From Lepidodermella squamata (lineage: Eukaryota > Animalia > Gastrotricha): a DNA stretch of 64,000 nt. The position numbers were made by a program, and so were the translations under genes. The stretch covers positions 186,001 through 250,000 of the forward strand of contig JBLDXI010000028.1 of the NCBI GenBank assembly GCA_047495785.1, read 5' to 3'. This document shows positions 31,071 to 56,271 of this stretch, in pieces (the stretch's first letter is position 1; each line of letters begins with the position of its first letter). The notes below the pieces were generated by a model. It saw only the letters and a list, made by a program, of their open reading frames with translations, was not told the origin of the DNA and ran no database searches.

Positions 31071-32907
31071 ATGTCAATTTTTGCGGTACATGATTTTGAC
31101 CTCAACCGTTTTGACACAAACATCATGCAAATTAACCCTCTAATGCCGGCAGCTTCTCGGCTTTATACAAACTGAGTTTACTCAATCGGTCAAAACTGAC
31201 TCAAAATGAGTATATACAGCAATCTACGTGTGTATACTCAACCGGGACCTCATTTTTTGGACTTTGAATTATGAAACTGAGTATACACTTGTACCAATTG
31301 AGTTTACTCGTGCTAAAAAAATTGTATAAATACGCACTTGAGTTAACTCAGGAAGAGCGCAACATCACATGAATTTTATTCATGAAATTCTCAAAATCTG
31401 AAAAAATTGAAGAAATTGCCGTAAGTAGCCTAAATCAAAGGTCGACATGATTCGCCGGCACGACCAGCAGCTAAACAACAGCACAGGTAGATGCGGCAAT
31501 CGGCGGGGTTGCGGCGCGCTGATGAAAATCGCTGCGAAGCCGCAACAGGTACGGGCAATTTGTTACAAAAAGGCTAATAGTTTCAGATAAAACCATAAAT
31601 TAAGTAATATTGATGTGTGATTTTGCGCTCTTCCTGGCTCCCTTTTATTTCCGAGCAGGCATTGTGAGAAAGAGCTCAGTATTGAGCAACAATCGCGAGC
31701 TGATTGTTGTTACGCAACAGTGTGTTGCGCAACACCAAACCGCGACCTAAATGCTGGGCACCCCGAATTATTATTATTTACCACAAAACATTTAAAAAAT
31801 GACAGTAAATAAAGCTATCGGCACCCGGCATGAGTAAACTCAATTGGCAACTGACTTTACACACAACTGAGTCTAACCATTCACTCAAAACCGGCCGTCC
31901 GGGCGGCCGCCATGTGTTTATACAAAAAATTGATTGAGTATACACACAAATCATCCGACCACCTGGCGCGCGCACTCACCTGTGTTACGCAATCAACGCG
32001 CCGACTTTGCGGTTTTCGGAATCGGGGAGCCCTGATGGCCAACTACAAAATTGCCAAGCGGCTAGGCCGGCAAAAATCGGGAAGTATGAAAATTCAAGGT
32101 GAATAGCGCCAGTTTGAGTATACACGTTTTCGGCATTAGAGGGTTAATTTAGCCCTATCGCGTGGCTATGCTGTTGACGCTGCTCGGCTTTCGAGCATTA
32201 TCCGTGATGTATTGGAAAATTCGGCCTTGGTGGGTTTCAGTGATCATCTGGCCGGTCAGCTTGAACTCTATGTAGATAAAAAACAGGCTAGTCGGCTTAG
32301 CCCGGAGCAGCGTAAAGATTTTTTGCGAACACTTAACGAACACCTGGTTTCGCTGAAGAATGCTACTAGTAACAAGTTGCAGTCTTGCAAGTTGTTAAAG
32401 GGCTTGCCGCAATACCCGCTGACCTACCTTAACAGAACCATGAGTTTTCGAGGAAATGATCTGTTCCCGAATTCAAACTGCACCACGGCTATTTTCATGT
32501 GCCACGGAAGGTTAGATGGAGACAGTTTCATGGTAGAATGGGAGTGCCCAACTCGAGATCTGCAACCTGATTACAAACCTATACGCCAAAGCCTCAACCG
32601 TGAACAATCGGCTATCAGAACTAATCCCATTCAAACGTATATTCGAAATTGGGTGTATAAAGTTATCAAAGAGAAATGGAATAACAGACATCTAATTCTG
32701 ATTCTTATCGCGGAGGGAGGAGCCGCAGCTGTCGACGACTACGCGGCGTGGGTCGCGATGACTAATGCCGATGTTGAGTTGGAAAATAGAGGCTGCAGTG
32801 TGACGCTGAATGCTGGCGAAGTCTATGACTGCATGGAGCTGTTCCTTTGGCTTTATGAGCGAGGCCTATTGCCTGGGCAACCTCCTGGCGATATCATCTG
32901 GAATTGA
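31071..32907 (+). pseudogene. Orphan family member 1 (about 274 aa when reconstructed), interrupted by a piggyBac-like element
   Basis: ATG 31071-31135 plus 32148-32907 read as one open frame (MSIFAVHDFDLNRFDTNIMQINLALSRGYAVDAARL...) once 31136-32147 is removed. Shares motifs with the ORFs at 50867 and 54642. Confidence 0.7.
31136..32143. mobile_element. Non-autonomous piggyBac-like element (1008 bp)
   Basis: TTAA|CCCTCTAATGCCG ... CGGCATTAGAGGG|TTAA: 13-bp TIRs, CCC/GGG termini, TTAA TSD, internal TGAGT(T/A)TAC repeats, no transposase ORF. Confidence 0.9.
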
Positions 32908-34441
32908 AAATAGCACAAACAACCTAATGATCAAGTCCACCGTGTCAAGCTCTTCCATACTGATAATCAAACTGTCATCACGTCCTGATTGGTACTAGCA
33001 AGAAATTTAGCTTTGTCTGGTCTGATAATTAATTGTGATAGTCGCTAAAAACCGGTGATATATATATTGCTATATATAGTAGTCAGTAGTCAGAGCAAGT
33101 TTTGAGCAGTCGTAATTCCCGGTTTTGTGTGCTGATGTTCATTTTTTTCGGAGATGTAAGCTGCAATCTTGTCTCTTCGTGTTGTGGCAGCCTGTGCTGA
33201 AGACAATAAAGAGGACCGCAAGCTACTTGTGTTTTGTGAAAATAATTGCTTGAGGTGGTTCAAGTTTTTCGGAGGTCTTGCGATGAAGACCCCCTGCCAA
33301 AATTAAAATCAATTGTAATTTTTGCACCATAAGGGAATTTTCATCAGTTCGGGGTGGCGATTCCAATAAGTGATTATCAGAGCAGCATTGATGAATAAAT
33401 TTGCTTGCTATTTACCGAGCAATAAATGGCTTACATTTCTGTGCCTCATTTGTAGCTTTTTTAGTTTCGACGCGTTTCAAGGTCGCCAAAATCTGTGCGC
33501 CCGCTGGAACATCTGGATCAAGCTGATAGCTCGCGGTCTGGGTCTTCATTATTGTCGCGGTGGGTTATATCAGCGATAGAAGGCAATTTTTTATTGTAAA
33601 ATTTCATTTCGAAAGGAAGAATGAACAATTAAATTAAAATCAAGGTTCCGCCCGGAAGCCAAGTCAACTCCTAAAACGAGACTGACATTTATTCATCTGA
33701 ACCGAAAGTTAAGCCTATATTTTATAGAAATTTATATACCTATTGCAGATGCGATTTGGGCTGTTTTCGGGCCTAAATAATTGGTTCTGACCTCGTTATG
33801 TGCCTCGAAGGGGTCCCCCACAGAGCAGCAGGCTTCAAAGCAGGGTAAACGCACACTACAGTCCTCCCAGTCTCACATTTTTGTCAATATTGGGGGAAGG
33901 GGGAGGGTTATTTTCGAAGCCGTCTTTATCGATATTCCATAGATTATTCCATAATGTCAACTTCATAACAGGTATGATTTCCGAACAAAACATCAACTTT
34001 ATTTTACTAGAATGAGTTCTATCTCGATAAAGTCGTCCAGCCTCGCCTTAACGGCCAATTTTCGTCCGAAATCGAACGCTTCGACTTCAAAAACACGGGT
34101 CGACCTAATTGTATTATGAATCATAGCGTACGTCACGGCTAATCAATCTGAAACTGCGCGACAATCTGCGCCTGGTTTTTCCTTCAGATAAAGCCAGCTT
34201 TATTCGATAAAATTGACTTTTCGGCTAATGTCGAAAATGGACATCTTCGAAGATAGCAAGCCGTCTTTATAATAATACGTCTTTATAATAATTATAATAA
34301 TAGCAAAACGGCGGACAAGTGAACCGTGAGTTCCAGAACGATCAAGACTTCGACCCACACCACCGTCAATCGTTCGTCAACATGACTCGCGGCAGCCAAC
34401 GACATCAATCTGGCGGATACTAGCACTACTCCACCGGCCCG

Positions 34442-37228
34442 GTGTCGAAAACTGGTAAATCATTACTGAATGACAATGCTAATGTGATAATTTCTCCCCC
34501 AAGTAACAACTATGATTTTTTGTTTCTCAATTTTATAGCCTGGAACATATTTAAATTTAGACCAGAATCTTTTCCTGAAATCATACTGTTATTGAAAAAA
34601 TTTCTTATTGTTGCCCTTCTAGAAACTTGGCATGATTCCAAATTTGTGCCGCCCTCTTTGCGTAAAGAATTTTTTGTTATTCATTCACCAGCTAAAAAGC
34701 TAAATAATGTGAGAGGTCGTAATTTGTCAGGAGGAATTATCGTTTACATTAACTCATCTCTCAAATCAATAATCAAAGTCTTATATAAATCTAGCTACCT
34801 GGTTGTTCTCAAAATTGATCTACCTGATTTTACCCTGCTATTGGCTTTCTGTTATATATTACCGGAAAAAAATGATACGATTCAGCGAAAATCGTTGAAA
34901 ATTGCTACCAAAAAGAAAATTTCTACCAAAATTTCTAGTAAAAAACAGTACAGTGGTCGTTTCAAAAAGCTCTGGGCCGAGACCACCAACAAATTGACTG
35001 AAATTAAAAATAATATTCGCATTGAAAACCTCCAGTCCCAAAAAAGGATTGAAATTATTATTATGGGCGACCTCAATATTCGCACTGGAAATTTAAATAG
35101 GACCTACGACAACCTAGACCCAAACTCGGACTTCTTCTGCAGTCACGTGCCTCCCAGAAACTCGAAAGATATTGAACTGCCCAAATGCGCTGCTTCAAAT
35201 CGTAATTACTTTTTTGAAAAGCTGGACGAAATTGGGCTTTACATCGTGAATGGGACCACACCATCCGACCAGCTTGGAGAATTTACCCATAAAAAACTCG
35301 GTGATAACCACAAACAGGCATTCACAGTCGTCGACTATGCTTTGGCGACCGAAACCCTCGCCGGGGAAATAAACGATTTTGAAGTTGTTATTAATGGGGG
35401 AATCTCAGACCACTACCCGATAGGCCTCAGCCTCGCTAGAAAAATCAAACTTAGCAATACCGACCACAGTTTTGATGATGACAAAGTCAATTTTCGAGTT
35501 AATAAGCATCAATTTGCATCACTGTGGGAGCACTTTCAGTTGAGAAACGCGCACAAAATCACTGACGAATTATCAGTACAAAACTTGTTACTGACACTCT
35601 ACAAAGTTGGCAAGGAAGCTTTGTACATCCGTAAACCCAAGCCAGAAGCCGAATCTTCTAGCTCATTTTTCGACGAGGAATGCCACTCAAAGAGGGCCCG
35701 GCTTAGAAAAGCTAGAACCCTATCAATTAGGCACCCCAATAATCCAGCATTTAAAGCAGACATGGATCAGGAGGAGAGAGAGTACCGCTATCTCCTTAAC
35801 CAAAAAAAGCAACAAAAAGAATCAGAACTTAAAGCCGAGGCTATCGAATTTTCAGAACTAATTGAACTCTGCCCTGCTGATTTTTTTAAGCTCGTTAAAG
35901 AGTACAACCGTTGGAAAGAACTTGATACCAATCTTGAGATGCCCTCACCCACTGAAATCATAGACGCAGATGACTTGGTCCTGATGGCCGAAAACCCCGA
36001 AAACTTACAAAAGTCACTCGATGAACTAGCTTCCTACTGTGACGACAACTCCCTTAAAATTAACGTTGAGAAAACTAAAATAATGATTTTTGAGAAACGT
36101 TTTTCCGAAAATATCAACCTAAAATTTACTCTCAACGGTGAATCTATTGAACGAGTAAAAGAATTTAAATACCTAGGCGTTTATTTCACGCATAATTTGA
36201 ATTTCGACAAAATGGTGGAGGTTATCAATGCGAATACAAAACGTATAACCGCACTGATCCCGAACATGATAGAGAATTTTACTACTTATCTTCCACCGAA
36301 AACATTTAATATTTTACACAACTCATACGTCATCGGCAACTACACTTATGCCAGTGGCCTCTGGGGCCAGACAAAAAAGAATAAAGTTTTCTCATTTAAC
36401 ACCCATTTCGTGAAACAAATTTGTCGAATTCCAACCTCTGCTAGGAATGAACTAGTAAATCGCGAATTCTACCTCGACCCACCTGCACTTGTCCTCACAA
36501 AATCAGCCGTCAGGTACTTCCTACGACTCAAGTTTGAGAACGAGCATGTGCTTATCAAAACTGCCTTTGACGTTATTGACGCAAATAAAAATCTATATCG
36601 CCATATTTTCAAACATTTACAAAGTGATGTCGAAAAACTTGGGGGCACCAACATCTTCACCGCCACTTCTCAATTTGAGGGTTTGGCTCATCTTGGAAAG
36701 TGGTACGAAGTGTGGATAACAAACAACAAAAAATCTATAGCTAATGATTTAAAAACTATATACCAAAATCCTGTTTTTACAGACGAAAATTTCGACAAAT
36801 TGCTGCTATATTCTAATGCTCAAAATGCTTTTTGGTCGGTGAAAAATATTAGGATACTCAGTATGATTAGGACAAACTCTCTCCATAAACCCTTTTGCTA
36901 TATCAATAACTTAGGATTAAAATGCATTTTCTGTCTTAAACATGGTGATTCGCTTGCTACGCCTATTAGAAATTTCCAAGATACTATAGATCTAATATGC
37001 CACCTCTATATTGAATGTAAATTTATCCCGAACCACACTCCTCTAACACAACTAGCCTCGATCGATAGTATCAATCATAATGTTAATAATTTTGTCAATT
37101 CAATTATCGAATCCATAGTAACTTGCAAATCCGTCAACAATATCGCACTGCCACACATCTTAACTATAGCTTCTAACTACCGACTCGCTCTTAAATTACA
37201 CGTTTACCCTAACAGTAATAACAATTAA
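34442..37228 (+). mobile_element. Non-LTR retrotransposon (LINE) ORF2: APE endonuclease plus internally deleted reverse transcriptase
   Basis: APE motifs IAWNI, LLETW, MGDLN, VVDYAL, SDHYPI. RT retains only ADDLVL, LKINVEKTKIM and FKYLG onward. C-terminal C-x2-C..H..C. AATAAA plus a (TTGC)n tail at about 37462-37484. Confidence 0.88.
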
Positions 37229-38072
37229 TGCGTAATTCTCCTGTCCTCTCTTTTCTGTCTTCGCCAATTTATTTAAATAATTCCCACGTCATGATCAGAA
37301 CTATATGTATTATAACTTTATATTATGTATTATAACTTATATTGTAACTATATGTTATGCACGTGTATGTATACATATATATCTGTCTGTGTTTATTATG
37401 TTCGAAAATATTCCAGGACGCGCCCAAAGCCGATGGCCGGTGCTAGTTTGCTTTTTTGATCAAATAAAACATTGCTTGCTTGCTAATAATACTTTTGGGT
37501 CCAGTACCTTCATAATTGCCTTTATAATAGTATCAAATTGAGCTGACTTCATTGATAGATTCGACTTCAACATAAGGTCTGCTTCGAAATTAAATTTAAT
37601 CGAAAATGAAAATGTTGCAAAAATACTTATGCTGAAACATTTTCGGGAAAATATTGAACATTTTTTTTGGCAATTCTATTGAAAATCACGAAATTATTGG
37701 CCAAAGCAGGTTGTTTTGCTGCTGAATAATTGACGCTATCAGGCCTACTCCACGGGTTAGTTCCGCTAAAAGTATAAGAGCCTTTGCAAACAATCGGTAA
37801 GTAATCACTTGAAAAAATATTTTTAATCTTATATGGAAAAATGCCATGATTTGATATAAAAAGTAGACATTTTTCAATCTAAAACCCAAGATGAAGATAA
37901 CGGCTTCGGCATTTGGTTATTGGTAGCTGTGATTTATTATCGAAGCCAAATAATCGTATTACTAGGATGAGGGCGTTTGACCTCGCTAACAGTCTAAAGT
38001 GTAGGAAGTTGTGGTCGGAAATGCATCAGAAAGCTTTAGGCGTGAGCTAAGTATAACAATGTTTGAAAAAAA

Positions 38073-41000
38073 TCGTGGACCCTAAGTTTTGTGAGTAATT
38101 TTCCTCATATTTTCAAACATTTCCATGCCTGCTGGGCAAATTTGGAAAAAAATGAAAATTTGAACTAAAATTGAGAGAAACAATGAAAGCCTATAATGAG
38201 GAAAATTGCTAATTCGCTAATTTTTATGTAGAAAGAATCGTTTGAAGGGAACTAGAAAATATATTGTAACTATTTTTCAGCGTCGAGTGATGGATGAAAT
38301 CGAGGAGCGGGTGCGGTACTAAAAAATTGAAATTAATTTACCTATCTAAATTGTTTGCCAAAATTTATCTATTTATTTTAAAATGAATTTAAAATAAAAA
38401 ATCAGCCGTTAAGAGTCTTTACGTAAAGAATGAGGTAGCTGTAAAAATCGATGGGAAGTTATCAGAATTTTTCTACGTAAATAGAGGCCTCAGACAAGGA
38501 TGTCCTTTATCGCCACTCCTTTTTATCACCACTTTCAATAAAATATGTGAAAAAGTAGCAAATGAAAAAGCCGGGTTTCCGTTGGGAAAACATTTTCTTA
38601 ATATTTTGGCTTTCGCCGATGATGGAACGCTGTTAGGCATGAATCACAACGAAATTAAGCTGTTATTAGGAATTTTCGACGCGGCTTGTAAAGAACTGGG
38701 TCTCAAAATTAACGCGGCGAAGACGCAATAAGTATATGATTATAGGAGGTGACCCAAAGAGAAATGAAAAATATAATTTGCAATTAGAAGGAAGCAAACT
38801 TGAAAAAGTAAGCACGTTCAAGTATTTAGGTAGCATTATAACTGATGATGGCAAACTCAGCCAGGAACTTATAGCACGCATTGCGAAAGCAGGTAGCTGT
38901 TTTGGCGAGATAAGCAAATTTATGTGCAAACATGTCTCTTTGGCCGTAAAATAAAAAATATTAAAATGCGTTATTATTCCAGCATTGATGTATGCCTGCG
39001 AGTCATGGAATATTACTGAAGACGAAGAAAGTGCGCTAAATACCCAAGAATATAGGTGGCTGCGATGCATCTTAGGAATTACAGTAATGGACTATATCCC
39101 TAACATAGACATTAGACTATCAATGTGTGGCGGAATAATTGAAGTCGGTAGATTAGATAAAAACAACGCCTAAATTACCTAGGACCTAGGACATATAATA
39201 AGGATGGAAACGTATGTCGACGATGAAGATGACCCGATACCACCGGGGCCAGTTTACGACCTTTACAGGTGGGTAGCGCCTAAGAAATGGCAGAGACCGG
39301 TGGAAAGACCTCGAACTAGGTGTCTCGATTCGGTAGAAAGAAGTTTAAGAAGAGTGGGTCTTACAGCCGAAAATATAATAAGGAAAAAAACTGACGGGTC
39401 CCGTGGCAGACCTCGTAAAGATGGTAGTAATATAACCGAAATTTTCGAAATAACTGTTAACTGGACATTGACCGAAACAACTGCACTAGATCGAGACGAA
39501 TGGCGTAAAATTGTCGAGACTTTTGAAGATTTTGAATTTTACAACAAAAGCAAGATACTCTCGGACGTGGGGGCGGTTGACTGATTCTTTTGGTTTGCCT
39601 TGCCTTCGCCTTCCTCAGAACCCGAAAGGGTATAGACGCTCAGTCGCGGGGAAGTGAAACAATAAAATCATTTCATTTTATTTCATTAAAATAAAAATTG
39701 CCTAAATTTAAAATGAATTTTGATTTTATTTTTCAGCGTCGAGTGATGGATGAAATTGAAGAGCGGGTGCGGTACTTTGCCGAAGCGTGCGACGGCCTCG
39801 AAGGCTTCCACCTGCTGTCGACGATGCACGACGGGTGTTCGCAGTTGAGCCACGATGTCCTGCAGTGGCTGGGCGATGACTACGCCAGGCGAGCTATCCT
39901 CCTCGCCCCGGTCGAACCCGCCCGCCTGCCTATGCGGTCGAGTACGACGACGAACTCGGGCATTTTGCCAGCGCAAAGATTGATCAACTGGGCGAGGTTT
40001 CTGCCGGAATTGTGGGCAAATTCGTCGCTGCTGGTGCCGCTTTCGTTGTCAGGCGACAGCCTGTGGCAGGGGCCTGGCCTTAATACCGAGGATGATACCC
40101 CTCTGCCGATCATCAACATACCCGGTATACGATATAACGTGAGTTCTGTGTACAATTTTAAAGGGATTCATCGCCTGTTACTTAAAACTAGATTTCAGTT
40201 CCCAATTTTCACCGTTTCTTCAGTCTAGGTTGTATTCAAATTTTGTCAAATTTGATTTTACGTTTAGGGTGACTCTAACTACCATACTTCGGCTGTGCTA
40301 GCAGCGGCCCTTGATACAGCCACCCTGCCGTACCGCCTGTCCAGCTCCGATGGTGCAGCCTACTCGCAGCGACTTGGCATGTCCGAATTCTTCGGCGTCG
40401 GCTCGAAATATCTCAAGGTATGAAATACAAAATATGAAATCAGACCCATCGAGTTGAATGGTGATTGAATTGTTGCGCAAATTTGAAGGCTTCAAAATCT
40501 GAGTGCCTTCTGATTTCGTCTAATAGCGAATCTTAAGTACCGTAGCAAAAGCTGAGCAAACCTAATGATAATCAGCTAGCTTGGGCTTCGAGTTCCGAGG
40601 AATATCGAAGCTTCATGGGGTTTCATTTCATCGAAAATTCCGATGACTGGTAAAATTAACTACTTAATTGGGCTTGACATGCTCTGGATTCTTAAATTTA
40701 ACACTTAACTTGAAATGCGATTCTTCCATAATCGAATCGAAAATCAAAGTAGGTGAAGCAAAGATATCAAGTTTTTTCAAGATGCCTTTGGTCGGTTTCT
40801 TCCGGCTAATTCGCGCATAATTGAGAAAACCCTAAAAATTGAAACAATTGATTGAGCTTATTCTGTTCTTTCTGCCGTTTTTAGATTAACGAGATGCAAG
40901 TGGTTTTGTCGTACCCGTTGAGGCAACCGCCCGGTCTCACGCCAGAACCAGTGAAACCCCTGGAAGTGACTTGGACCTCGTTATCACCGCCTCCGATTTC

Positions 41001-41487
41001 TCAGTCGAAACTCAACTCGGCAAGCCACGGCAACAGCAACGCTCGCCTGCTGTCCCGCTGCTGCACATTGCGAGGTCTCGAATCACTGCCAGTCGCTGAT
41101 AAATCGGCTTTCGCGTCGCCTGACATGCGTCGATTCTTGTTCACGAAGGCGGAACGCGATTTCGAGGCGACTTTAACGAAATCCCTACCAGTGGTTGATT
41201 CTTTCGTGAAAACGCACTGCAACTTGGTGGCCAAGTCGTTGTCTGTTAAAAAGCCGTTTCCTCGCTCGATTTTCGCTGGACCCCGCAGCGATGCAATGGC
41301 GAAACCCATGGCCAGCGCGTTGGTTTCATCTGGCGCGCATGTCGCGACGTTCCTCGGTAATCTGCATGGGCAGTGTGAGCGCATGTCGAGGTCGAAACTG
41401 GTAACAGTGCTGCCGGAGTCGACCGAGTGGTCCGAACACCTCGAGTGGCTGGTCGACACGGTGCTGCGAGCTGAAAGTCTCAAATAG
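38073..41487 (+). pseudogene. Second, 5'-headless copy of Misato (last 18 nt of exon 2, intron 2, exons 3-5; copy B) with open exons
   Basis: 38073-38092 is identical to 24319-24338, and homology continues through intron 2. Exons 39737-40138, 40268-40417 and 40885-41487 are open, have intact splice sites and encode a nearly identical protein. Confidence 0.9.
38400..39690 (+). mobile_element. 5'-truncated, decayed LINE (RTE-like) reverse transcriptase fragment
   Basis: GLRQGCPLSPLLF, LAFADD, FKYLGSII and LMYACESW motifs with stops. AATAAA plus a (TTTCA)n-like tail near 39660-39690. Lies between 50-bp direct repeats 38271-38320 and 39727-39776. Confidence 0.85.
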
Positions 41488-42120
41488 ATAAACTGTGATG
41501 CTATATATTTGCGCCATTATTATTTGTGATTTTTTTGCGTTGCGCGAAAAACTGGACAATTATTTACTCCGAATTGTTTTCTTTCTAAGTAGAGTTTTGC
41601 GTAGTCTGGTTTTGTTTCGGAATATTTCGGCTGGTTTTATCTCGCTGAGCCGGGAAATGAACCAAACTTGGTCACCCTGCGCTGAACCTAACTGAAATGA
41701 GTTTGTAAGTGGCTATCATGTCGAATTATTTCTTAGAAGCTACCCTCAAACCGAATTTAAATCCGCCGAAATTTAATTTACAGTCCGAAATCTCCAGAAC
41801 CTAAAATCACAGAACCTAAAATTGTCAGTATAGAGTATAGATCAATGAAAATTAAGCCGTTGCTTCATAAAAGTCCAGAAAGTTTAAGCGATTGCTCATT
41901 TGGCTCAACTTAACTCGAAACTAGCTCAGGCGCCTTTTGCAGCAAAGTTCGAAACCAACACAGCCTATATTGGTACGATATTGTCTAATCTCTCGAGTCT
42001 TCAATGTAAAGAAAATGGAGATCTAAATTTGTCCTGGAACTTGATTAACACATTTTCTTTCATATTGGACTTCGAAAATCGAATTACCAGATTTCTTACA
42101 ACAAAAATATATTTCTTAAT

Positions 42121-42525
42121 TTTTCAGCGCCTGGTGGTCTTATAAGCCTTGCAGGCTAGTATGTTGCCGAAAATTAGATAGAAAATTTGAAAATTCTAAG
42201 GGAAGAAACAGTGAGAAGTCCAAACCACGGCCAAAAGAGACAAATTCTGAAATGAGCCGATGGAGAAATAACTGATCTTTAAAAAAATGGGCATTTTCAG
42301 AACCGGGTGGATGAAATTGAGCCACGATGTCCTGCAGTGGCTAGGCCCTGCGAGCTATCCCTACTCGCCCCAGTTGAACCCGCCCGCCTGCCTGTGCGGC
42401 TAAGTTCGATCGACAGGGCGAAGTCGTCGCTGCTGTGGCCGCTGTCGTTGTCCGGTGGTAGGTTGTCGCAGGGGCCTGGTCTAAACACCGATGACGATCA
42501 CACCCGGTATAAGTTAAAACGTGAG
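42121..42525 (+). pseudogene. Decayed Misato exon 3 (older copy C)
   Basis: GAGCCACGATGTCCTGCAGTGGCT; the translation LLAPVEPARLPVR...LSLSGGRLSQGPGLNTDD matches exon 3 with deletions and frameshifts. Donor remnant AAAC|GTGAGT. Confidence 0.85.
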
Positions 42526-43324
42526 TTTTGTATGACATTTTCGGTTATTCATGACCCGACAGACTGACCTTGCTGCTATTGAAAATAAAAGATTTGTTTT
42601 CCTCCCATTTCTTTCCCTCTTGTCATCGCTTTTCATGGCGCAATATGGCGCAATCGGAATAGGCGCTGAATTGAGGCGGGCGAGGTCATGCCGGCTGACG
42701 TAATTCAACGTAGATGAGGTGAAACCTGAATCGACTTCTGACACAGTCATCTTTGAATTTTAGGGCGCGCTTCTTTTAGACAGGCCACGCAGTGTCTCCT
42801 TTGATTTGAGTTAGGGTCACAGCGCTCCTCAAGTTTCGATTCACGGCTTCGCACTAGGCGGGCGGTTGATTCTCATTTATCTCCCCGCCCGTTTGAAAAA
42901 TCTCGCGGATTTGGTTTTCAACCGTTTAAATTATGTTTCAATATGTTAAGATGATTTTTTCTGCATTTTATTCTGTAATTGTGGCAGATAATAGGCACTA
43001 AGGTGAATCAGGCTATAGAAAAATCTAGAGCCTTCTATCCCGATGGTTGATGGATACGTGGGCCCATAATGATGGCTTTTACCTATCATTTCATTTCATT
43101 TGATTTTTTTCCAATTTGAACGACTATTTTAGCTGCTTAGTTATGTTTCGGCTACTAAACTTGCTTTTTGTTTCACCTTCGGCCTTCGAATGCGAAACAC
43201 TCCTTTCCTATTTTGAAGCCGATATGAGGGGGCAATCATGTGCATGCATTACCGCATTACCCTTCTTATTAAGAGGTGCCTCCTGAACGTTTTGCAACAA
43301 AATGATGAATGTTATCATTGGTTC

Positions 43325-43412
43325 ACAGGTTGATTCCAGCTTCGATACAGCCGCCACCCTGCCCAATCGCCTGTGTCCAGCTCTGACGCTTGGCTCGAAG
43401 TAGATCATGGTA
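43325..43412 (+). pseudogene. Decayed Misato exon 4 (copy C)
   Basis: TCGATACAGCCGCCACCCTGCCCAATCGCCTGTGTCCAGCTC...GGCTCGAAGTA resembles 25321-25427. Confidence 0.7.
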
Positions 43413-44426: not shown

Positions 44427-44675
44427 CAAATATTCTACGTTTGAAACTAAGTGAGACTAATACTTCACATGGTTGGAAAAAGCGATCTGGCCTTAACATT
44501 TTGTTATTTGTTATTTGCTGTGAAAAAACTTATTTTTCTTTGATTTTATCTTTGATAATAATACAACTGTAGCTTTCTGACCTTTCTGAAAGGTTCCACT
44601 GACTAATAATTAATCCGCTGTGATCGCTTTTTCAAACCAGGTGAGGTTTACTTAGTTTCAAACGTAAAATATTCT
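44427..44675. mobile_element. Small inverted-repeat element (MITE-like)
   Basis: AATATTCTACGTTTGAAACTAAGT...GGTTGGAAAAAGCGATC pairs with GATCGCTTTTTCAAACC...ACTTAGTTTCAAACGTAAAATATT. Confidence 0.6.
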
Positions 44676-46068
44676 GAGCGAACATTTTTCAATTATCCGC
44701 TTTTTTTATTTAAGGACAAATATACCAACCCAAATAATAAATGCTCTTGTTTTTCTCCTGGAATTCAATCAAACAGTATCAAGTCTCTAGTTTTTTTGAC
44801 AATATTAGCTTGGGCTTATGTATCCTACTCTCATGTTGCTCTCTCCAGCCTCCATGGTTAGTTCTAAGCATTTTTTGCTCTGGACGAAGCACATTTGTGT
44901 TTTTAAGAGGCTTTGAGATAATCATCAATTTATTAAAACGTAAAATTATGAATTACCCTGAGTGACAAGGATTCAGATTTTCTGATCAACTTGGCCTGAA
45001 AACTTTTTACTTCCTTATAAATTGAAGAAAATTGAGCAAAAAATCATAATTTTTTAACTTCGACACACAATTTTGGTTAAAAACATAGATTTCAGTTAGA
45101 CTATTCCGTGCATTCATAATTAACAAGCAAATTGATGTGATTTGAACAAGTTTTTGAATCCCTCATCTCTTCTTCATGTTTTGTGTTATGCTGAAATATT
45201 CAGAGGAAAATTCTCTTAACCCCATTTTTCACTTGTATGATACCCGCTTTTCCGAAAAACTACCAATTTCGATTATTTGGAAATGAGTAAGAGAATTATG
45301 AGATGACAATCTCTCTTTATTCTTCTCCTTCTCTCCTTTTTGTCATTCTATTCGCAATAATTGGGGAATGATACTAATTGTGCAATATTGAAGAAATAAA
45401 ATGTGAAGATTTTTGATTATTTCTTCTGGTTTTCAATTACTTTTATTCCCGCAACTTCGAAAGGGGACAGAGAAATAAAGTTCGGCATTCGTATTGCGAC
45501 CATCTTGGCGGGCCTTGTTTACTGCTCGCGGAAACAGTAATATTCATATTATAACTCGGGTTTCCTTTCAGTTGCTGTTATTTGGGACAATCACAAATTG
45601 GCGAAGTCAGATACGTTGCAGATCAGGTTCACGCTGGTTATGAATACTAATAGTTTCGAAGCAGCCATCTTGCAGCGGCTGTTGCAGCGGAGGAAACTAC
45701 TTCATCCGAAGGTAACCGGAAAGATACATTATTGTAAAATAGCTATGGCCCAATCACTCATTTGTGGACCCAGAATCGCCAATTATGAATAAGCGAGGTC
45801 AAAAGCGATACGCTACCTTCCAACATTAGATTTACATGAGAAAAGAAATATCAGCGATAAACGATTCCCGTTATTTCTATCACCAGGAAATCGGCCACAG
45901 CAAAATGTTACCTGTAAAACTGAAAAACATCAGCAATTTTTAACAGTTTGGTCCGAATTTTTTCAGCCAAGCCAAAAAATCGAATTTTCGAACTTTCAGG
46001 CCAATGAAGATACTAGCTACCGTACTGCCCGGAAAACCTCGATGAACCCCTGACATTTACGAGCAGAA

Positions 46069-46338
46069 TACTTTTAGCGGAACCAAATTGTTGCGGAACC
46101 AAATCCGCATGTCGCGGAACCTAATTTTAGATGAGAAAAAGGTCGATTTTCAAATATTTCCACGAAATTAAGGCAATTTATGAATTCTATACTAAAATGT
46201 GCGTCTTATACAGAATTTCACGCTGAATTCAAACGTAATTTATTTTAAATTATGCCGATCAATAATGACATCCTTATAACTTTCGAAAATGGGGTTTGGG
46301 CACACGGAAAATTCCAAAATTTGGTTCCGCTAAAAGTA
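46069..46338. mobile_element. MITE with about 21-bp TIRs
   Basis: TACTTTTAGCGGAACCAAATT ... AATTTGGTTCCGCTAAAAGTA, with internal GCGGAACC repeats. Confidence 0.7.
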
Positions 46339-46559
46339 AGACCCATTTACGAGGGACTGACATTTATTTATCCGAACCAAAAGTTGAATGCCTAGGTAAC
46401 CATAAAGGCATTCTATTCCCTGATACTACGTATTTTGACCCAATAAATTGGTCCCTCACTTTTCGAAGTGCCAAGAGTAGAAGTTATATCCAATCAAAAT
46501 GGCTGAAAATGATCTGGGTGCAAACCACCCGAACGGGGGCATCCAGGTATAAATTATAT

Positions 46560-48900
46560 TTATTAGACCTTTTCCATCGTATCACGTGACCTGACAATGT
46601 GTCCTAAATATCTTAAGCGTTGTTTTTCGATTATGCGACTCACTTCAATGAGCCCTCCGCATAGAGCCAGCCTAATATCGATATTTGGTATGTAGTCCAT
46701 TAGGTGTTTTTTTTTATTCGACCCGGCTTGCCCGCGCCCGGTCTGCCCGCACATTAATTCCGCCCAGACCGCCCGAACACCCACGGCCGAACACATTTTT
46801 TATCTACCCAGCTTGCCCGCACTCTACACATCGCCCATAACGCCCGGCCTCTCAAGACCGGGCAGCTGCGGGAAAAATGATCACGCACGCGATTCGAAAA
46901 AAATTGCAAAAAAACACGAATTATGAGTGCTAAAGTAGTGCAAGTGATTTTATTTCTGCTGCTGAATAATAATGGAGAAAATCATAAAATAAATGCAAAT
47001 AATATGTGTCGTACCGTTTTAGGCGATCCTCCCAATAGGCAACTGGGATAACCCATGAGGCAATATGCCTAAGATGGAGATATAAGATATCGCTAAGGAC
47101 AATAATTGACAGTATCTGGAAACTCTGAATATTCCCTGCTGTAGCCTAAAAAGGTTGCTCACTGATTAAATTTCTAACTAAGGGGGTTGATAGAGATATA
47201 ATAAAGCTTTCCCGAAGTTCAAGCACCAAAAACCGACTAATAGTTAATAGTTGGCAGCTGAACGTTTTGCTGAACCTTCCAGCAGGTTCAAGATAATGAT
47301 CTTAGTTCCGACTTATTAATTTCGACATCTGAAGCAATCGATCAGTCTAATAACTAAACCCAATCCCTAGCTCACATAAATCGGATTTCATGGAGGTTGA
47401 AGAGACTCTAGGATCAACTTCCGTGGAAAAAAGGAATCAGAAAATTCAAGCAAGGTGAACCACATACTAGAACTGGGGAACCGGAAATGAAACTGCTAGG
47501 TTTGACATCCTTTAAGAAAATTTAAATTTGGGTATTATTTAAAATTTCCAGCCATTAATGCCGAAAAATGATAATAAGTAGGGAATAAATTGAAAATACC
47601 ACGATTATCGGTCATCAATGTATTGTTTTGGGAAATAATTATTTTGGGAATTATTAAATTGCTTAAAAAGTGGATTTTTAGAGCAATTTCTCTTTAGGGT
47701 AATTCAATTGCCAATTGGGGCGGATTGCTCATAACGGTACGACATATGTCATATGGCATATGGCATAATAATGTCGTAACTATTGAGCAGTGACTTTTCA
47801 TCAGTGACAAATGAGCAAGTGACACTTCATCAATTTTTATTTATTAATCTCGGGCATTGAACTTGCATTTGAGCTCAACTTTAATGCAGCGCATAGTCCC
47901 TGAAATGCTGAATACGGCTGAAATTCTGTTGATGAAATGTCTTTGCTGAAATGTCGCTGCGCAAATGTCACTGAGTTAAAAATTATAAATTTGAAAAATA
48001 CTTGATAAATTAACAAAAATCACTGCTGACTTGTCACTGATAATTTGTCACTGCGCAAATGTCGCAACTCAAATGTCTCTGCTCATTTGTCACTGATGAA
48101 TTGACCCTCATTTGCTGAAGTGTCACTGCTGAAAAGTCTGACCACGGTAGGACAGGTCTGCCTAGCAAACCACGGCGATTTTTGCTAAATTCGAAAATTT
48201 TGAATTCAAATTTCCAGCCTCCGTTCAAAATTTTACAAAATTTCATGACAATTTTAGAATATAGTTGAATGATGGAGAATCATATGAGATCGAATTTTTC
48301 AACATCCGAAGCGAGTTGGACACTGGCATTAAATTATGCGTGGCGAATGACCTTGACCATCAGGTTGACCAGGCCTGTTTCAGAATATTTTAAATGCGGA
48401 AGAATGGGAATTTGCGATCAGAAATATCATATGAAATCAAACTATACTCGGTCACATTTCATTGAATCATGCTGTAGATTTTATCCTTCCTAATTAGGCA
48501 AGCATCAAGTTAGACTGGAATGGTGCGAATTATATTTTCCCTTGGTTTGTGATCATAGATCAGCAATCGCAGTAAAAAATCGCGAAAATAAGTGTTATTA
48601 GCACTTGAGCCCGATGACTTTTTTTTAATCGCCCGTGCTTCCCAGCTCGCCCGCGTAGAAGTTGTTTTGATAAAAAAATGTTTTCGGACCGCCCGCACCG
48701 CCAGGATTTTTTTATTGCTCGCCCGTACAATCCGCCGGATCTCCCCGGGCGCAGTGGGGAATAAAAAAAACACCCTAGGTGGACACCTACTATTGATCGA
48801 AGCCAGCGATACTCTATTGTATTCAGTCTTTCTTGGGCTATCGATATGTTCCAGGATTCACAGGCGTAAATGGAATGGACACAGGCGTGAGGAATCTCAC
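46560..48900 (-). mobile_element. LINE fragment (same family as 38400-39690) split by a TIR element
   Basis: Minus-strand YRWLRSIVGVHL (about 48775-48820) continues into MDYIPNIDIRLALCGGLIEV (46700-46600), matching YRWLRCILGITVMDYIPNIDIRLSMCGG at 39050-39140. Confidence 0.7.
46703..48775. mobile_element. Non-autonomous DNA transposon containing a nested TIR element (about 47003-47748)
   Basis: GGTGTTTTTTTTTATTC ... GAATAAAAAAAACACCC termini with subterminal GCCCG repeats. Nested inverted pair TGTCGTACCGTT (47007) / AACGGTACGACA (47733). Confidence 0.65.
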
Positions 48901-49419
48901 TATATATTCAAAACTTTTGTTGGGATCAAGCTAGTGTCTCTAGGACAACCTCAATCAATGGCACTTTCCCGGGCATCTCTGGGGTTTTCCGTGTTTTAAG
49001 GCGGATGGGAGCATCCTTAAGTTCTGAAATTTGAAAATTCAAAATCCTCATGAAAAACCGAGTAAAGACATCTAGGAATCTAAGAATCGTCCCTCCTCAA
49101 GTCAACACACGTTTTACCATTTGCTTGAAAATACAGAAAATACGCCAAACCCCACTTTTCACTTATTTTCGGTCAAATGTAATTCTTTTTTGAAAAATAT
49201 TATTTTTTCTATAATTTGCTGAAGTACGAATATGCAATCTCTGCTGCCCTTTAGAGGTTGGAAACCGAATTGTAGTTTCGAAATTTTTGATCCTATCAAA
49301 GATCGCAATTTTCTTTCCAGAATAATGGCATAAAGTTTGCTTACTACACTTAGTAGACTGATACCTCGGTAATTTTGACACTTACATTTTTCGCCCTTAT
49401 TTTTGTAAATTGGGGTAAT

Positions 49420-49700
49420 TATGGCTGTTGACCATTCCTCATTTTTCTTTCCAGGCTTGGTTCAGAATTTCGCTGAGCCATTTAATATTGGTTTCACTGA
49501 GGGCTTTAATCATTTCTGGTCGAATTTCATCGACCGAGCTTTCCCATTTTTCATGTGGTCAATAGCGTTCTTAATTTCGGTTAGTGTTATTTCAGTCAAG
49601 CTTAGGTTTTCAGGGGAAATATTTGGTTCAGGGTTGTCAGGCTCATTTTTCAAATCCCAAAATCGTTGAAATCTCTGGAAATCATGTATGGGTAGATCGA
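49420..49700 (-). mobile_element. Decayed LINE RT N-terminal fragment
   Basis: EITLTEIKNAIDHMKNGKA is typical of the segment preceding non-LTR RT domain 1. Confidence 0.55.
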
Positions 49701-50514
49701 CCACAACAAAATGCGAGGGAAAACATTTACAAGAAGTTGATTACTCGAAATTGGATTTCTTATGATGACAAATGAGAAGTTTTTTTATGGCCAGGATGGG
49801 TTTAAACCAAATAAACTCGGAATTTGTTATGATCATACCGGCATTTTGCGCCTTTCTCACGATGTTTTCCCACGATGCTTATTGCCGTAATTGATTTTGA
49901 AATCCCTGAAATCAAACTGTTTTGCCCCAATCAAATCGTTATTCTTTCAAATCAGTCCCTGAAATCAAATCACATCTAAAAAAGGTCTGAAATCGTGAAA
50001 ATCGAAATCTGAAAAATCAAATCCCCAACACTGCTCAGTTGAGGCTGCTTAGACCTCAGCAGAATTGATAAGTTTCATGTGTTCTTGCTGTAGAAAATGA
50101 AATGACTCGCGGGAAATCAAAACATTTTGGTCGCCTAATTTCTCGATATCGGCTTCCGATTGTTTGAATTTCACAACAATATTCAAATTTTTCCTATAGA
50201 TGTATGAACAGTTTGATGGGCAATGAGAAAAATGGACGGTTCCCGTTTGCGCGTCTTATTTTGCGCGACACGCACCATGCATATGCACCATGTGATAGTC
50301 GAGCAGATCGCGAGAAAAATGAAAGCGTGTTTATATGGCGGAAAAAAGCTGAAAAACGCTGAAATACACTTTTCTCGTCTGGGAAGTGCTGAAATTGTTA
50401 GCTGAAATGTGCCTCTATTGATACGAAAGATAACCTGAAATCATTTGCCAGCTTATTTCAGCTTATTTCGTGCCGGTCTGGGTAACAGTTCAGCTGATCC
50501 AATGAATTCTACCT

Positions 50515-50775
50515 GTTCTGTTCTTTAGATTAACGGCATGCAAGTAGTGCCGCTGTACAAGTTGAGGCAACCGCGTGGCCCCACGCCAGAAGCAGTTTTA
50601 AACCACTTGAAGTGATGTGGACACCGCCTCCATTTCCGAAGTCACAACTGAATTCGGCAATATTCATCGCAACGGCAATGCTCGCCTTGCCGCCTGTTGC
50701 GTCGCTAGACCTGCGTCAATTTTTGTTCACAAAGGCTTAACGCGAATTCGATGCGACTTGAGCGATATCCCTACC
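50515..50775 (+). pseudogene. Decayed 5' part of Misato exon 5 (copy C), acceptor retained
   Basis: CTGTTCTTTAG|ATTAACGGCATGCAAGTAGTGCCGCTGTAC..TGAGGCAACCGC and CGCAACGGCAATGCTCGCCT align to 25980-26295. Confidence 0.85.
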
Positions 50776-50866
50776 CTTCTAATAGCAGTTTGCGACAGGT
50801 TTATGTTCGATTTTTAGTAAATTTTCTGTCTTTTCCGTAGATTTTTAAGAGTAATTTACGATTACG

Positions 50867-53363
50867 ATGGCACCATCAGCTGTCATTAGTCTGCAACAGA
50901 ACTCTCGGCTCTCGCTCCTTCAGTATATCATCTTCGACTTGTTCGGAAATATCTCCAAGGTGCTCGACGATATCCTCAAGGTGTTCGACGAAAACGAACG
51001 CCTTAAGCAAGAAAATCCAAACGGATACCATATCCTTGATAAGGCTGTTGAACAATTGCACCGAGAGCGCTCCAAACCAGTCTGCGTAAAAAGTCTTCCC
51101 ATAATTGTTCAGCTCATCAGCGCTCATAAACGTGTATACAATCATGTAACGGTTCATCAAGGACATGGAGACAATGAAACAACGAGGAAAGTACTCGAAG
51201 AACTAGGAGCACGACGAGGATTACTGGTTGCGCTGCAAATGGTAATCAAAAGTATAATCTCAGAAGAATTGACCTATGTTCCATTACGCGTCGTACGCCC
51301 TTGCTTGAAGGAGCTGCTGGATAATTTCGCAAGCACCTGCATGCCACCTCCCAACGGTTTTTTCGACGACAGCCTCGGACTGTTTTACAAAACTGTGAAC
51401 GATGACATCCAACTCCTCGACCTGGTCGAGGATTCGACATACATTGAACTACTCAGCCCGGCCAACGATCGGATGTACATTGAACTACTCGGCCAAGTCA
51501 AAGATTCGATGTACATAGATGATGTAACGTTTTTTATCCCGCTACCTTACTCCGTATCGCAATCGAATGGTAGTCTTTGGATAGCCTTCTTTTTAGGAGG
51601 TGGCTCTTACGAGACCGCGGACGCTGTGGAAACCAAGATGAATAGATCCATCTTGTCATGGTTGGAGTTCAATATCCAACGTGGCCAAAGAAATTGCCAC
51701 TTGGTCTGCCTCGAAGACGCCAAATGTGGCTATAATCGATATGGATACCTGCGAAAAACCGTGGAAGCTTTTTTGAGGGACCAGAGTAATAAATCAATAT
51801 TAAAGGACCTGCAAATTAGCGTCAGAGTTCAACGTGGTTTTATGAGGTTGAATGGCCAAACTGACAACAGGCTCAGCTGCGCTTTTGCTCTGACATGGGC
51901 CGCGAGCAACGCCCGACGGTTGGGTTATCGAATGCCACCGGCTTTGAGGCGTGAAAGCGTCGGACGCAACATCATCGACTCAGAGGAACCAACTTACGAA
52001 GAGATCGGAGTTGTACCGGATGACCGTCTCGTTTTCTGGTCACCCGAGGATGTCAACTTATTAAAACACGTTTGTAAGGAGTATTTTGGTACCAGAAGCG
52101 ATAATCAACCGCCAACTTTAAAAGATGTCATTGTTATCGTTAAACCCGTTGACGTCTTCAAATTGCTATGCTACTTGAACAAGTTCATTTACACAACAGA
52201 CGGAGCTAGTGACTTGCAGCGGACGGGCAAATTATCTCGGCTTAACCTGCGCAAAACCTTCAAAGCCATCATCAGCAGCAAATTGATTCGTTCCATCGTC
52301 CGGATTAACAGGGAACAACAGGTAACTGATAAATCTTTACTAAGAGCATGTCCGTTAGGTAGCCTTTTCGCGGCCGGTTTCAACTTTTTACCTTATTCTT
52401 GCTGAAAATTAACAAGAAAGCACATCTGGCATCTTTTTGGAAATCAACCCTTCAAGGGGAGGTTTGAGTTATCCGCGATTTTACCGAAGAAATTAAGAAT
52501 TAACCGGAATCCGGAACCCCATGGAATCGCGTCTCATCGCTGACTTTCTGATATCTTCTGATCGCAGCCGGTGGATAATACTTGGAGTAGGCCTCATACG
52601 CAACCAAAATTGAGGTGGATCGATTGTATTGAAAATATTTGAACAAAATCGGTATTAACAATTAACAATTATGGGGAGGCCCGGGATAGGAACGTTTGGC
52701 GGCGTTGTTATTTTGGGGAAATTTAAATTTTCGATCAAGAAATGATTGAGTTAGGCGAGCAGGATAGGCAGTACTCTTGGCGTGAACAAAATTATCCAGC
52801 GTATTGGGTACACCGGAGGAACTTCGTTTTATTATTTTTCTTTATCATTTAATTTTTTTAATTTGCTGATGATTAATTGAAGAAAATGATAAAATTAAGG
52901 TAATGCTAAGCTATGCCATGATCTGTTTTCCGTGTACTTGATTCTTTTCTTCTATTCTTTCATTTTGGTTTTATTTCATTCTGGCCTTTTAAAAATGAAA
53001 AATTATTGATTTACGAATGCGGCTAATTCTCCGATGATGATACTCATAAGTGTACTCATACATAATTTTTTTTAATATCATCAGGGTGAAGCAGGTTGGC
53101 CCGATGTCGGCAGATTCTTCATTCCTGATCCTAACAATCCTGGTGCCCCTCTCATCAATAAGCCGAAAGCCCTGAGCAAGGCATGCTTCGAGTTGTACAA
53201 GACTTGCTGGGAAAAAGGATGGAATATCAGCAATATCTCGAAGCCAAACGAAAGCTTTATCAGCCTGCAGGTCACCGTCGCAGAAGCTCATCAGGATTGG
53301 CTGTTGGTTCTCTGCGAATATCTAACTGCGCAGAAATTCGTCTTTTATCGCAGTTACGCCTGA
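50867..53363 (+). CDS. Orphan family member 2: 512-aa ORF plus a probable terminal exon 53085-53363
   Basis: Long open frame 50867-52405 after the acceptor ttttccgtag. In-phase donor CAG|GTAACT at 52321 and acceptor catcag| at 53084 would give about 577 aa. The 53085-53363 peptide aligns to the C-terminus of member 3. Confidence 0.65.
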
Positions 53364-54400: not shown

Positions 54401-54547
54401 TTGCATGAGCAGTGAGCAGCTGATGCAGGTTTTCGAGGTCGAAACCAGTTGCCACGGTGTTGCCCGAGTCCGAGATTTCCGAACGCCTCAAGTGGCTGCT
54501 CGATACGATGCTGTGAGCTGAAAGTCTCAATTGAACACGGCTGTGAT
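54401..54547 (+). pseudogene. Decayed 3' part of Misato exon 5 (copy C)
   Basis: CGGTGTTGCCCGAGTC...CGAACGCCTCAAGTGGCTGCTCGATACGATGCTGTGAGCTGAAAGTCTCAA aligns to 26511-26590. Confidence 0.85.
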
Positions 54548-54641
54548 TTCAATTTAGGACGAATACTATATTAGCATTTGTGATGCTTGTGGTTAATGAC
54601 ATTAAAGTTGGATTGCAATTTTCTAGATTTTTTGAACTATC

Positions 54642-56271
54642 ATGACATCATCGGTTGTTGTTTGCCCTGCTCTTGTCATACGGGATTGGTTGCTGCTTTC
54701 TCAAAGCCAGGGCCTGCTTGATAGCTATGAAGTTCACGGAGAAGAAATTGACCCAGAAAAAGCTAGACTCTTGTGTGCTACGGTCGCTTAATTGGGATAT
54801 ACAGGATTACAATGTTGGCTGTTCAATTTAATGCCTGGGATCATCGAAAAGCGCTATCGTACTTCGATATTAGGCGAGTGGTTGGAAGGTCTCAGACGGT
54901 ACTTGCTATCTCGCATTGAAGCAGTTGATATCAGCCGCGATCTCACTCGCCTATTTGGCATTCCGAACTACTGTGGCTGGCGTTTGGACTTTGCAATTAC
55001 GACACGAACCAGCCACTGCCTTGCTCAAAGATCTACTTGGCACGACCCTGTCGAACCAGCTGAACGCGCCGGATTCCACTGAATTGCAGGTCGTGTACTT
55101 TCTAGGCAAGGGCGGCTTTCGTGGGGCATTTAGCAACCAGTTCCAGCTCTTATTTGATCTACCAAATGGGGGCATCGTTCGAGCGGCCGTGGTTGCAGCC
55201 TACATTGAGGCGTGGTTCAACGCCGCGGCGAACGGGCGCCATTTAGTCGTCGTGGTAGATGTAGAGAATGGCCATCTTGCCGTTGAGGATTTGACTAAGT
55301 TTGCAGCAGCCGGCTTCAATACGCTGTTAACAAATGGCGGCGAATTGGAGCGAAGAGAGTGTAGCATTACCGTCCAGTCTGCTAGTCACGCCGGCGGCTT
55401 CACATCGCTGGTATTCGCGTTGCTCAATTCTCGACACCTCGGCTATAGAGTGCCGGTAGCGTTGACGGCGAATGCGATTGCTTTTCCGCATATTTCCGGC
55501 CTGCCAGAGGTGTCATTCAGGCAGATTGGCACTCCAAGCGAAAAAGTCCAGCGACTGCATTTTTTGAACGGGGACACCGATGCCGCGTTGGCGCGTGATT
55601 TGTGGAACGGGCTACTCAGCCATGACCCGTGGCGGGACCCGACACATCGTCCTGTAGTCGAAGTCGCTGTGCCACCTACTGAGTTGCATGCATTCATGCG
55701 AAACTTGGACTGGCCGGCATATCGAGATATTCTATACAGTCTGGATCGAGAAGCATTGCTTGCCATTTTAAGCCAGTTTAGCCCGCGGAATATCGTCGAC
55801 ATTTGCCTCGAGAAAGCCGTCGAGCGCTTGCGCAGTGACTGGCATAGGCTGGAATTTCTGGGCGAGTTCGATATTGACGAAGTGCTTTTCTGCCTGCGGC
55901 GACGTCAGCTTGATCGTAGCAGCATACTCGAATTAGGTTGGAATTCCAAGTTGCTTTCAACAAACCGCGATTACCTGGGTGAAGCCCTTGCCGTATTGGA
56001 AGCTGGAGTGCGACATCTGATCTATCGCGTCAATTGGGATGCAACTGATGCTCTTGATCGTTTAGATCTGATTCACATATTAGGCGAATTGCATGGCAGC
56101 GTGAGTGTTGCCTTGCATCTTCGAGGCCTTCAGATCTCGCTTGTTTCTTTGCCAAGCGATACTCAGCGGTACTTACGCCTGCGAATTGACATGAATGACG
56201 CCGACGCTGATCAGATTCAGCACCTTGAAAGGTTCCTTGTTAGGGAGAAGTACACCTTTTGGCGTGCCTAA
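54642..56271 (+). pseudogene. Orphan family member 3, apparently disabled (TAA at 54789 and a frameshift at about 54970-55080)
   Basis: ATG 54642 (MTSSVVV; member 2 begins MAPSAVI) after ttttctag is in frame with track ORF 54792..55082 across one TAA. The rest is track ORF 54916..56271, which lacks its own N-terminal ATG. Confidence 0.65.

Follow-up and report, generated by a model that had tools for sequence, protein, structure and literature searches.

A putative lineage-restricted protein family of three old paralogs, arranged head to tail beside Misato in the gastrotrich Lepidodermella squamata

Introduction

Orphan tandem families of invertebrate genomes form small local arrays of divergent paralogs, which have no relatives outside the lineage, undergo birth and death of copies and reside in a repeat-rich setting. 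In this study we describe a locus that shares all of these features, located within a 64,000-nucleotide stretch of the genome of Lepidodermella squamata (assembly GCA_047495785.1, contig JBLDXI010000028.1, positions 186,001 to 250,000 of the forward strand). This whole stretch is referred to below as the window, and all coordinates are counted from its first nucleotide. The locus comprises three open reading frames (ORFs), designated m1, m2 and m3, placed among complete and decayed pieces of the Misato gene. It differs from the described orphan families in two respects: each copy, and each stub of a copy, begins at a fixed distance behind a Misato 3'-end piece, and in age the paralogs far exceed these Misato pieces.

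At the protein level, two described domain types resemble the product of the locus. The first is Peptidase_C14, with which the m1–m3 proteins share a hydrophobic strand followed by x-G and, about 40–70 amino acids (aa) further on, a second strand followed by D/x-A/V-x-x-G. In contrast to Peptidase_C14, the proteins of the locus carry long additional N- and C-terminal regions without parallels in that family, the aligned position is occupied by a Cys in none of them (in m2 it occurs one residue later), and a His is present in m1 only. The second is the SLOG/LSDAT domain, abundant in the same genome, in which a Rossmann-like strand is likewise followed by (H/G)GG. The spacing of the motifs is 41–54 aa in the family described here, compared with about 35 in SLOG/LSDAT.

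The three ORFs had previously been noticed in a sequence-only reading of the window, which described them as an unrecognised family and tentatively took them for fast-evolving, partly inactive members of the caspase-hemoglobinase fold. The analysis presented below leads us to consider it rather probable that m1, m2 and m3 are old, head-to-tail paralogs of a lineage-restricted protein-coding family, which is located immediately downstream of Misato and whose products have a Rossmann-like core.

Results and Discussion

Homology of m1, m2 and m3

All of the motif strings quoted in the sequence-only reading were found in three plus-strand ORFs, at the places given there, and mutual alignment showed that the three-member family is real. 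BLASTP comparison gave significant matches for the pairs m1–m3 (E-value 1e-7, 31% identity over 74 aa) and m2–m3 (E-value 7e-5, 25% over 159 aa, with the shared N.R.LGYR.P.AL...IG segment included). The pair m1–m2, when compared alone, is not significant (E-value 3.1), and these two members are joined through m3. The core common to all three proteins comprises about 160 aa and contains the conserved motifs (i) hhhF(L/M)xxG, (ii) (R/C)HLhhhhxhxxG and (iii) (E)L(E)xRxCS(V/I)T. The significant m1–m3 segment stops short of the AIFMCHGR motif of m1, which was paired with FLGGG/FLGKGG of the other two members in one alignment and left unpaired in another.

The C-terminal tail proposed to be common to m2 and m3 (KFVFYRS and KYTFWRA, respectively) was also recovered, as a 49-aa alignment with a Smith-Waterman score of 60, compared with 26.2 ± 4.3 for shuffled sequences (1/2000). 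This match links the open frame at 53076–53363, assigned to m2, with the end of m3. The likeness between members is limited to the core and the tail, since no significant similarity was detected in the N-terminal regions or in the ORF part of the C-terminal halves. The proteins are thus built of a variable N-terminal region, the core, the N.R.LGYR.P.AL segment (in m2 and m3) and a helical C-terminal region ending with K(F/Y)xF(Y/W)R(S/A).

Confinement of the family to a single locus

A profile of the three cores, searched against the 121 Mb genome, identified exactly three places (E-values 1e-74, 1e-70 and 2e-47, the last being that of m1, 1.7e-47 before rounding), and in searches with single proteins each member retrieved only itself. 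This genome-wide check, suggested in the sequence-only reading, revealed that the family is confined to this locus beside Misato, with no other place in 121 Mb. The possibility that the ORFs encode an accessory protein carried by a transposon was refuted by the same result, as the three places all lie in the window and have neither terminal repeats of their own nor transposase or reverse transcriptase domains. The long interspersed nuclear element (LINE) and the piggyBac-type element found nearby are separate insertions and not parts of the family.

The description of the family as unrecognised was likewise upheld by the libraries and databases consulted, none of which places the proteins (these searches, as well as the fold searches presented below, were run exon by exon). 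Scans of all three proteins against Pfam, NCBIfam, PADLOC and PHROGs gave nothing meaningful, and sequence searches of the PDB with the profile and with each protein returned no meaningful match. An exhaustive profile search with the core alignment against 1.84 billion representative proteins was blank, as were word-index searches and metagenome contig scans performed with m3 and m2.

Gene models

The coordinates of the family members, and those of the Misato pieces and the acceptor-like sites discussed in a later section, are presented in Table 1. Splice pairs were found by listing frame-compatible introns.

Table 1. Features of the m1–m3 locus (window coordinates)
Feature	Position	Strand	Remarks
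m1 start	31071..31135	+	ATG and first 21-22 codons; open from ATG 31071; severed from the remaining ORF by the mobile-element insertion
m1 main ORF	32148..32907 (ORF 32212-32907, frame open from 32148)	+	conserved core
piggyBac-type non-autonomous element	31136..32143 (1,008 bp)	.	interrupts the coding exon of m1; flanked by the duplicated TTAA (31132-31135 and 32144-32147)
m2 main ORF	50867..52405	+	512 codons from ATG; likely donor CAG|GTAACT at 52322
m2 putative last exon	53085..53363 (open frame 53076-53363)	+	T-run...CAG acceptor at 53084; homologous to the m3 C-terminus
m3 candidate first exon	54642..54788	+	49-codon frame; ATG 15 nt past acceptor-like site
m3 main ORF	54874..56271 (ORF 54916-56271)	+	465 codons open from 54874
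Complete Misato gene (copy A)	23645..26593	+	ORFs; Tubulin_3 match in whole-genome scan
Misato 3'-half duplicate (copy B)	39727..41598	+	blastn 84% over 1984 nt; exons 94%, 3' untranslated region (UTR) 73%; its equivalent exon also matches Tubulin_3
Decayed Misato pieces	26874-27068, 29885-30506, 42304-42992		
Decayed last-exon Misato piece, directly upstream of m2	50513..50824	+	blastn 72-74% to Misato A/B; residues 20-115, 49% identity, 4 stops
Decayed Misato 3' end, directly upstream of m3	54415..54534	+	blastn 79%; 68% aa, 2 stops
Acceptor-like site after complete Misato	26687-26702	+	ATG 26731, 27-codon stub (whole feature 26687..26814)
Acceptor-like site after remnant 26874-26945	27024-27040	+	ATG 27072, 11-codon stub 'MAPG...' (cf. 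m2 'MAPS...'); feature 27024-27107
Acceptor-like site before m1	31032-31046	+	ATG 31071
Acceptor-like site after Misato copy B	41582-41598		ATG lost
Acceptor-like site before m2	50831-50846	+	ATG 50867
Acceptor-like site before m3	54619-54633	+	ATG 54642

The ATG of m2 is a true start, because an in-frame TAA (50852) is located 15 nt upstream. Enumeration of donors and acceptors showed that the donor at 52322 and the acceptor at 53084 are a frame-preserving pair, the use of which would yield a product of 577 aa. The predicted junction to the last exon is putative; the 763-nt intron that it would remove contains a fragment of a LINE tail (about 52560–52720).

The 5' end of m3 is uncertain, because the ATG at 54642 is out of the frame of the main ORF and the candidate introns are unconvincing. 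Several frame-compatible GT..AG pairs could connect the first exon with the main ORF (e.g. 54732 or 54783 to 54873), none of them having a strong consensus. An alternative start is the ATG at 54727, combined with a 60-nt intron.

The coding exon of m1 is interrupted by a piggyBac-type element, whose inverted-repeat arms of 20 nt are 100% complementary (terminal inverted repeat CCCTCTAATGCCG). At least 45 matches to this element occur in the genome, including 4 full-length copies of 95–96% identity, and this high identity of the full copies shows that the element family was recently active. Excision of positions 31136–32147 (1012 nt) in silico restores the frame exactly and joins the ATG at 31071 to the main m1 ORF. 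The start of the family region at 31071, given in the sequence-only reading, therefore coincides with the m1 ATG, but this ATG is parted from the main ORF by the mobile element. In our interpretation, m1 has been disabled by a recent piggyBac-type insertion. Its C-terminal half was not recognisable in 32908–34441 and 37229–38100, the intervals searched for family pieces. Additional pieces of the family were sought in the window behind both Misato copies (A and B), behind m1 and in the region 42990–50500, and none was found; scans for tRNAs and Rfam families over 23000–57000 were empty.

In their reading frames, m2 and m3 look intact. Taken together with the stubs listed in Table 1, the locus most likely holds two apparently intact copies, one recently disrupted copy and two copies reduced to stubs.

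Coding character and age of the paralogs

The chance expectation for open frames of 465 codons is about 3e-6 per window, and the two long frames observed here span 465 and 516 codons. With a codon model trained on 3,700 codons from other genes of the same genome, the log-likelihood per codon was +0.09 to +0.18 bits in frame, which is comparable to the values of the training genes themselves, and it fell below zero in the remaining frames. For the three pairs of members, the identity of the core at codon positions 1/2/3 was 0.38/0.46/0.32, 0.43/0.57/0.27 and 0.34/0.46/0.18; the second position is the most identical (0.46–0.57), and the third is at the random level (0.18–0.32). The saturation of the third positions, combined with the similarity of the first and second, indicates conservation at the protein level and thus old paralogs. 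The members had been suspected to be fast-evolving, which these data do not show: saturated third positions mean that the copies are simply old.

The ORFs might alternatively be nonfunctional, i.e. decaying pseudogenes, chance frames or the cargo of a transposon. The truncated and interrupted state of m1, the start of m3, which is not clean, and the richness of the region in LINEs and other repeats are what such an explanation would predict. It would, however, have to accommodate two frames of 465–516 codons that have stayed open despite saturated synonymous divergence, codon usage that is in frame, and the presence of only three copies in the genome, devoid of terminal repeats and of transposase or reverse transcriptase domains of their own. 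We therefore regard it as very improbable.

Several points nevertheless weigh against the interpretation of m1–m3 as old paralogs of a lineage-restricted coding family. The higher identity of codon positions 1 and 2 over position 3 is partly expected from an alignment based on protein sequences. The m3 start requires an intron lacking a strong consensus, and the 5' end of this gene may be damaged. The databases may contain few proteomes of the relatives of this animal, and the apparent lack of relatives may in part reflect sampling. The structure models, presented in the next section, are of such low confidence that even the designation "alpha/beta" is tentative. Finally, the gene status of all three members is a prediction from the nucleotide sequence.

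Fold of the conserved core

AlphaFold models of the proteins were unusable, with predicted local distance difference test (pLDDT) values of 36.1 for m3 alone and 38.6 for the core when modelled from the three-row alignment (predicted template modelling score 0.40). DSSP assignment of the three-sequence model, itself of low confidence, gave an order of strands (E) and helices (H) of E70-82, H105-116, E122-131, H133-153, E164-169 and H172-186. This alternating pattern tentatively suggests that the core is a Rossmann-like alpha/beta domain. Fold searches with the weak model returned generic Rossmann-like rows only (GT-B glycosyltransferases, DegV, flavodoxin), which are within noise: the Foldseek E-values were 0.05 or higher (nothing at E≤1e-3), the TM values in the atlas did not exceed 0.46, and the best VIA-align Z was 5.8. 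A caspase was among none of these rows.

The assignment to the caspase-hemoglobinase fold thus gained no significant support from Pfam, hhalign, AlphaFold, Foldseek, VIA-align or the atlas. Of the checks proposed for it, hmmscan at E≤1 gave no match to Peptidase_C14, CHAT or a related family, and the AlphaFold and Foldseek route ended in the poorly modelled, generic Rossmann-like rows described above. The "caspase-like spacing" on which the assignment was partly founded does not discriminate either, because a distance of 41–70 aa from one strand end to the other would be obtained with any beta-alpha-beta unit. What did stand is the remark on the catalytic residues: no member has a complete His/Cys dyad, the residues at the aligned catalytic positions (His/Cys) being H/E in m1, G/K in m2 (with a Cys one residue later) and K/E in m3. 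From these residues, an active caspase-type protease is ruled out for every member, and an inactive member of the fold is compatible with them.

The core could accordingly be imagined as a caspase-hemoglobinase fold without catalysis, with m1–m3 as pseudo-proteases in which FLG(K/G)G would correspond to the His strand and D(V/A)xxG to the Cys strand. For m3, language-model features pointed to clusters of bacterial Peptidase_C14 proteins (0.87, each of the ten top matches), albeit below the reliability line of the tool, and with a feature overlap of 94–103/256, far under the 170 typical of true members; the same model sends m1, the sole member with His-Gly, to SLOG. In the best hhalign segment, LQVVYFLGKGG was aligned with VSLFYYAGHG of the His strand, and a permissive realignment, with near-zero confidence, set the following helix and HLVVVVDV colinear with LNIVILDAC of the Cys strand. 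The spacing in m3 (52 aa, compared with the 53 that separate H93 from C146 in the caspase alignment) and two invariant Gly residues, one after the His position and one two residues past the Cys position, also agree with this fold. However, the hhalign comparison with 37 bacterial caspase-family proteins yielded a probability of 0.9% (P 0.063) over 14 columns, i.e. over the same motif that had prompted the idea. It should be added that the power of this test was low, the effective number of sequences (Neff) of the alignment being only 1.8. Moreover, there was no Pfam match at E≤1, no caspase among the PDB sequence matches at E≤10 or among the Foldseek, VIA-align and atlas rows, and His and Cys occur together in no member. 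A caspase-type pseudo-protease is consequently unlikely, and the generic Rossmann-like core is preferred.

An even less likely identity is that of a very divergent nucleotide-binding Rossmann domain of the SLOG/LSDAT type, similar to the MHR1/2 region of TRPM, which we consider highly improbable. The language-model features of m1 led to LSDAT clusters (0.81–0.84, 142–145 shared features), of which one consists mainly of Rotifera sequences. The motif hhhh(H/G)GG is similar to LISVHGG of TRPM, and with at least 60 LSDAT exon matches this family is greatly expanded in the genome. Against this, the language-model scores were under the reliability line of the tool, and hhalign comparison with 15 LSDAT domains from the same genome gave a probability of 0.2% (P 0.28), with neither motif aligned. 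The scans with the Pfam LSDAT models (PF18139, PF18171) gave 63 and 42 matches in the genome, none of them on this contig.

As a separate observation, many of the at least 60 LSDAT/SLOG exon matches are located on one contig (C32), which indicates a large expansion of TRPM-type SLOG genes. A U-box was also considered, on the basis of a PDB match to NleG (E-value 0.83) and of the CS(I/V)T...LGYR.P.AL segment, and was rejected, since hhalign comparison with six U-boxes of the same genome gave a probability of 0.04%.

Association with Misato

As reported in the sequence-only reading, the family ORFs are situated on the Misato strand (plus), among Misato remnants. There is no second Misato locus in the 121 Mb genome. 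About 90–105 nt past each Misato stop codon or remnant we observed a run of pyrimidines that terminates with TAG and leads into ATTTT, with an ATG 15–38 nt further on (six places; after copy B the ATG has been lost). The stub behind the complete Misato gene (26687..26814) lies about 100 nt past the Misato stop and, judging from this position, the stub beginning at 26731 is probably the truncated start of another copy of the family. The Misato piece preceding m3 (54415..54534) can be aligned colinearly with the 3' flank of the real Misato gene as far as the acceptor-like site. This shared 5' layout suggests that the ancestral order was most likely Misato followed, ~140 nt later and on the same strand, by a gene of the family.

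The acceptors had been cited as a common trait of the family members. The pyrimidine-TAG signal before each family ATG is real, but the same kind of site precedes unrelated genes and is not specific for the family. Pyrimidine runs ending in TAG occur 4–40 nt ahead of the ATG in Misato itself, in an ADPGK-like gene and in the ORF at 57055 (23575-23644, 19285-19354, 56985-57054). Such sites may mark gene starts generally, as acceptors of 5' UTR introns or of spliced-leader trans-splicing, the latter being a process that occurs in several phyla of invertebrates. A spliced-leader sequence of bdelloids is absent from the genome, a result that says little.

The exclusive occurrence of the family beside Misato could also be explained if m1–m3 were very old, strongly diverged duplicates of the tubulin-like domain of Misato, the locus then being composed of Misato copies of different ages. 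In agreement with this, the helix-strand motif of m1 aligns with RLINWARFLPELWANSSLLVPLSLSG of Misato (Smith-Waterman score 44, reached by 35/3000 shuffles). This value is, however, not significant after 21 comparisons, and m2 and m3 gave no signal. Comparison of the family profile with the Misato exon by hhalign resulted in P 0.39, and Tubulin_3 (PF14881) at E≤10 matched only Misato A and B plus tubulins. An origin of the family from Misato is, in our opinion, most improbable.

We then return to the preferred interpretation, in which the paralogs are old, their age being very different from that of the Misato pieces. When Misato copies A and B are compared, their non-coding DNA is 73–83% identical, and their third codon positions 85%. 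The pieces preceding m2 and m3 carry stops, yet retain 72–79% DNA identity to the working gene, about as much as the non-coding DNA of the two copies. Given this identity and the saturated third positions of the family, the Misato pieces must be far more recent than the divergence of the paralogs. They were either brought there by later partial duplications or are old remnants that gene conversion from Misato keeps renewing.

On these grounds, the following history of the locus may be envisaged: (i) a separate start would exist for each gene, preceded by a splice-acceptor-like site and located about 140 nt past a Misato 3' end, (ii) the array would have grown by tandem duplications of units starting inside Misato, and (iii) the flanking Misato pieces would have been renewed later, either through gene conversion or through additional partial duplications. 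The encoded proteins would act via an alpha/beta domain with a binding role, which would be non-catalytic or at any rate not of the caspase type. A bolder version, which we judge improbable, is that m1–m3 constitute a previously unseen alpha/beta family (a dead caspase offshoot or a new fold), whose starts are coupled to the Misato 3' end in an operon-like or trans-spliced manner, and that the upstream pieces are kept similar for the sake of downstream expression.

If the genes are expressed, they provide a clean, small example of a lineage-restricted family whose core cannot be placed by current tools for sequence, profile and structure-prediction analysis. The family would then be a suitable target for structure determination, and the persistence of orphan families could be studied on it. 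The fixed tie of each copy to a younger Misato 3'-end piece is unusual and may inform on gene conversion or shared transcription units in this genome. Nothing among the analyses performed links the family to apoptosis, immunity or the mitochondrial role of Misato, and the practical importance of the finding is modest for now.

Other observations

The last exon of Misato copy B has kept 98% protein identity, compared with 85% at third codon positions and 73% in the 3' UTR, which suggests selection on this half gene.

The window is eukaryotic, containing spliced genes and being rich in LINEs. Between m1 and Misato copy B there is an uninterrupted LINE ORF of 928 aa (34442–37228) with matches to endonuclease and reverse transcriptase. 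Directly after m3, on the same strand, lies an ATG-started ORF of 351 aa (57055–58110), which has neither a Pfam match nor similarity to the family and may be another orphan gene.

The assembly also includes a contig of 1982 bp carrying a bacterial caspase-family gene. This contig is probably a contaminant, because the gene is 97% identical to a metagenome protein, with a close match named Cyclobacteriaceae.

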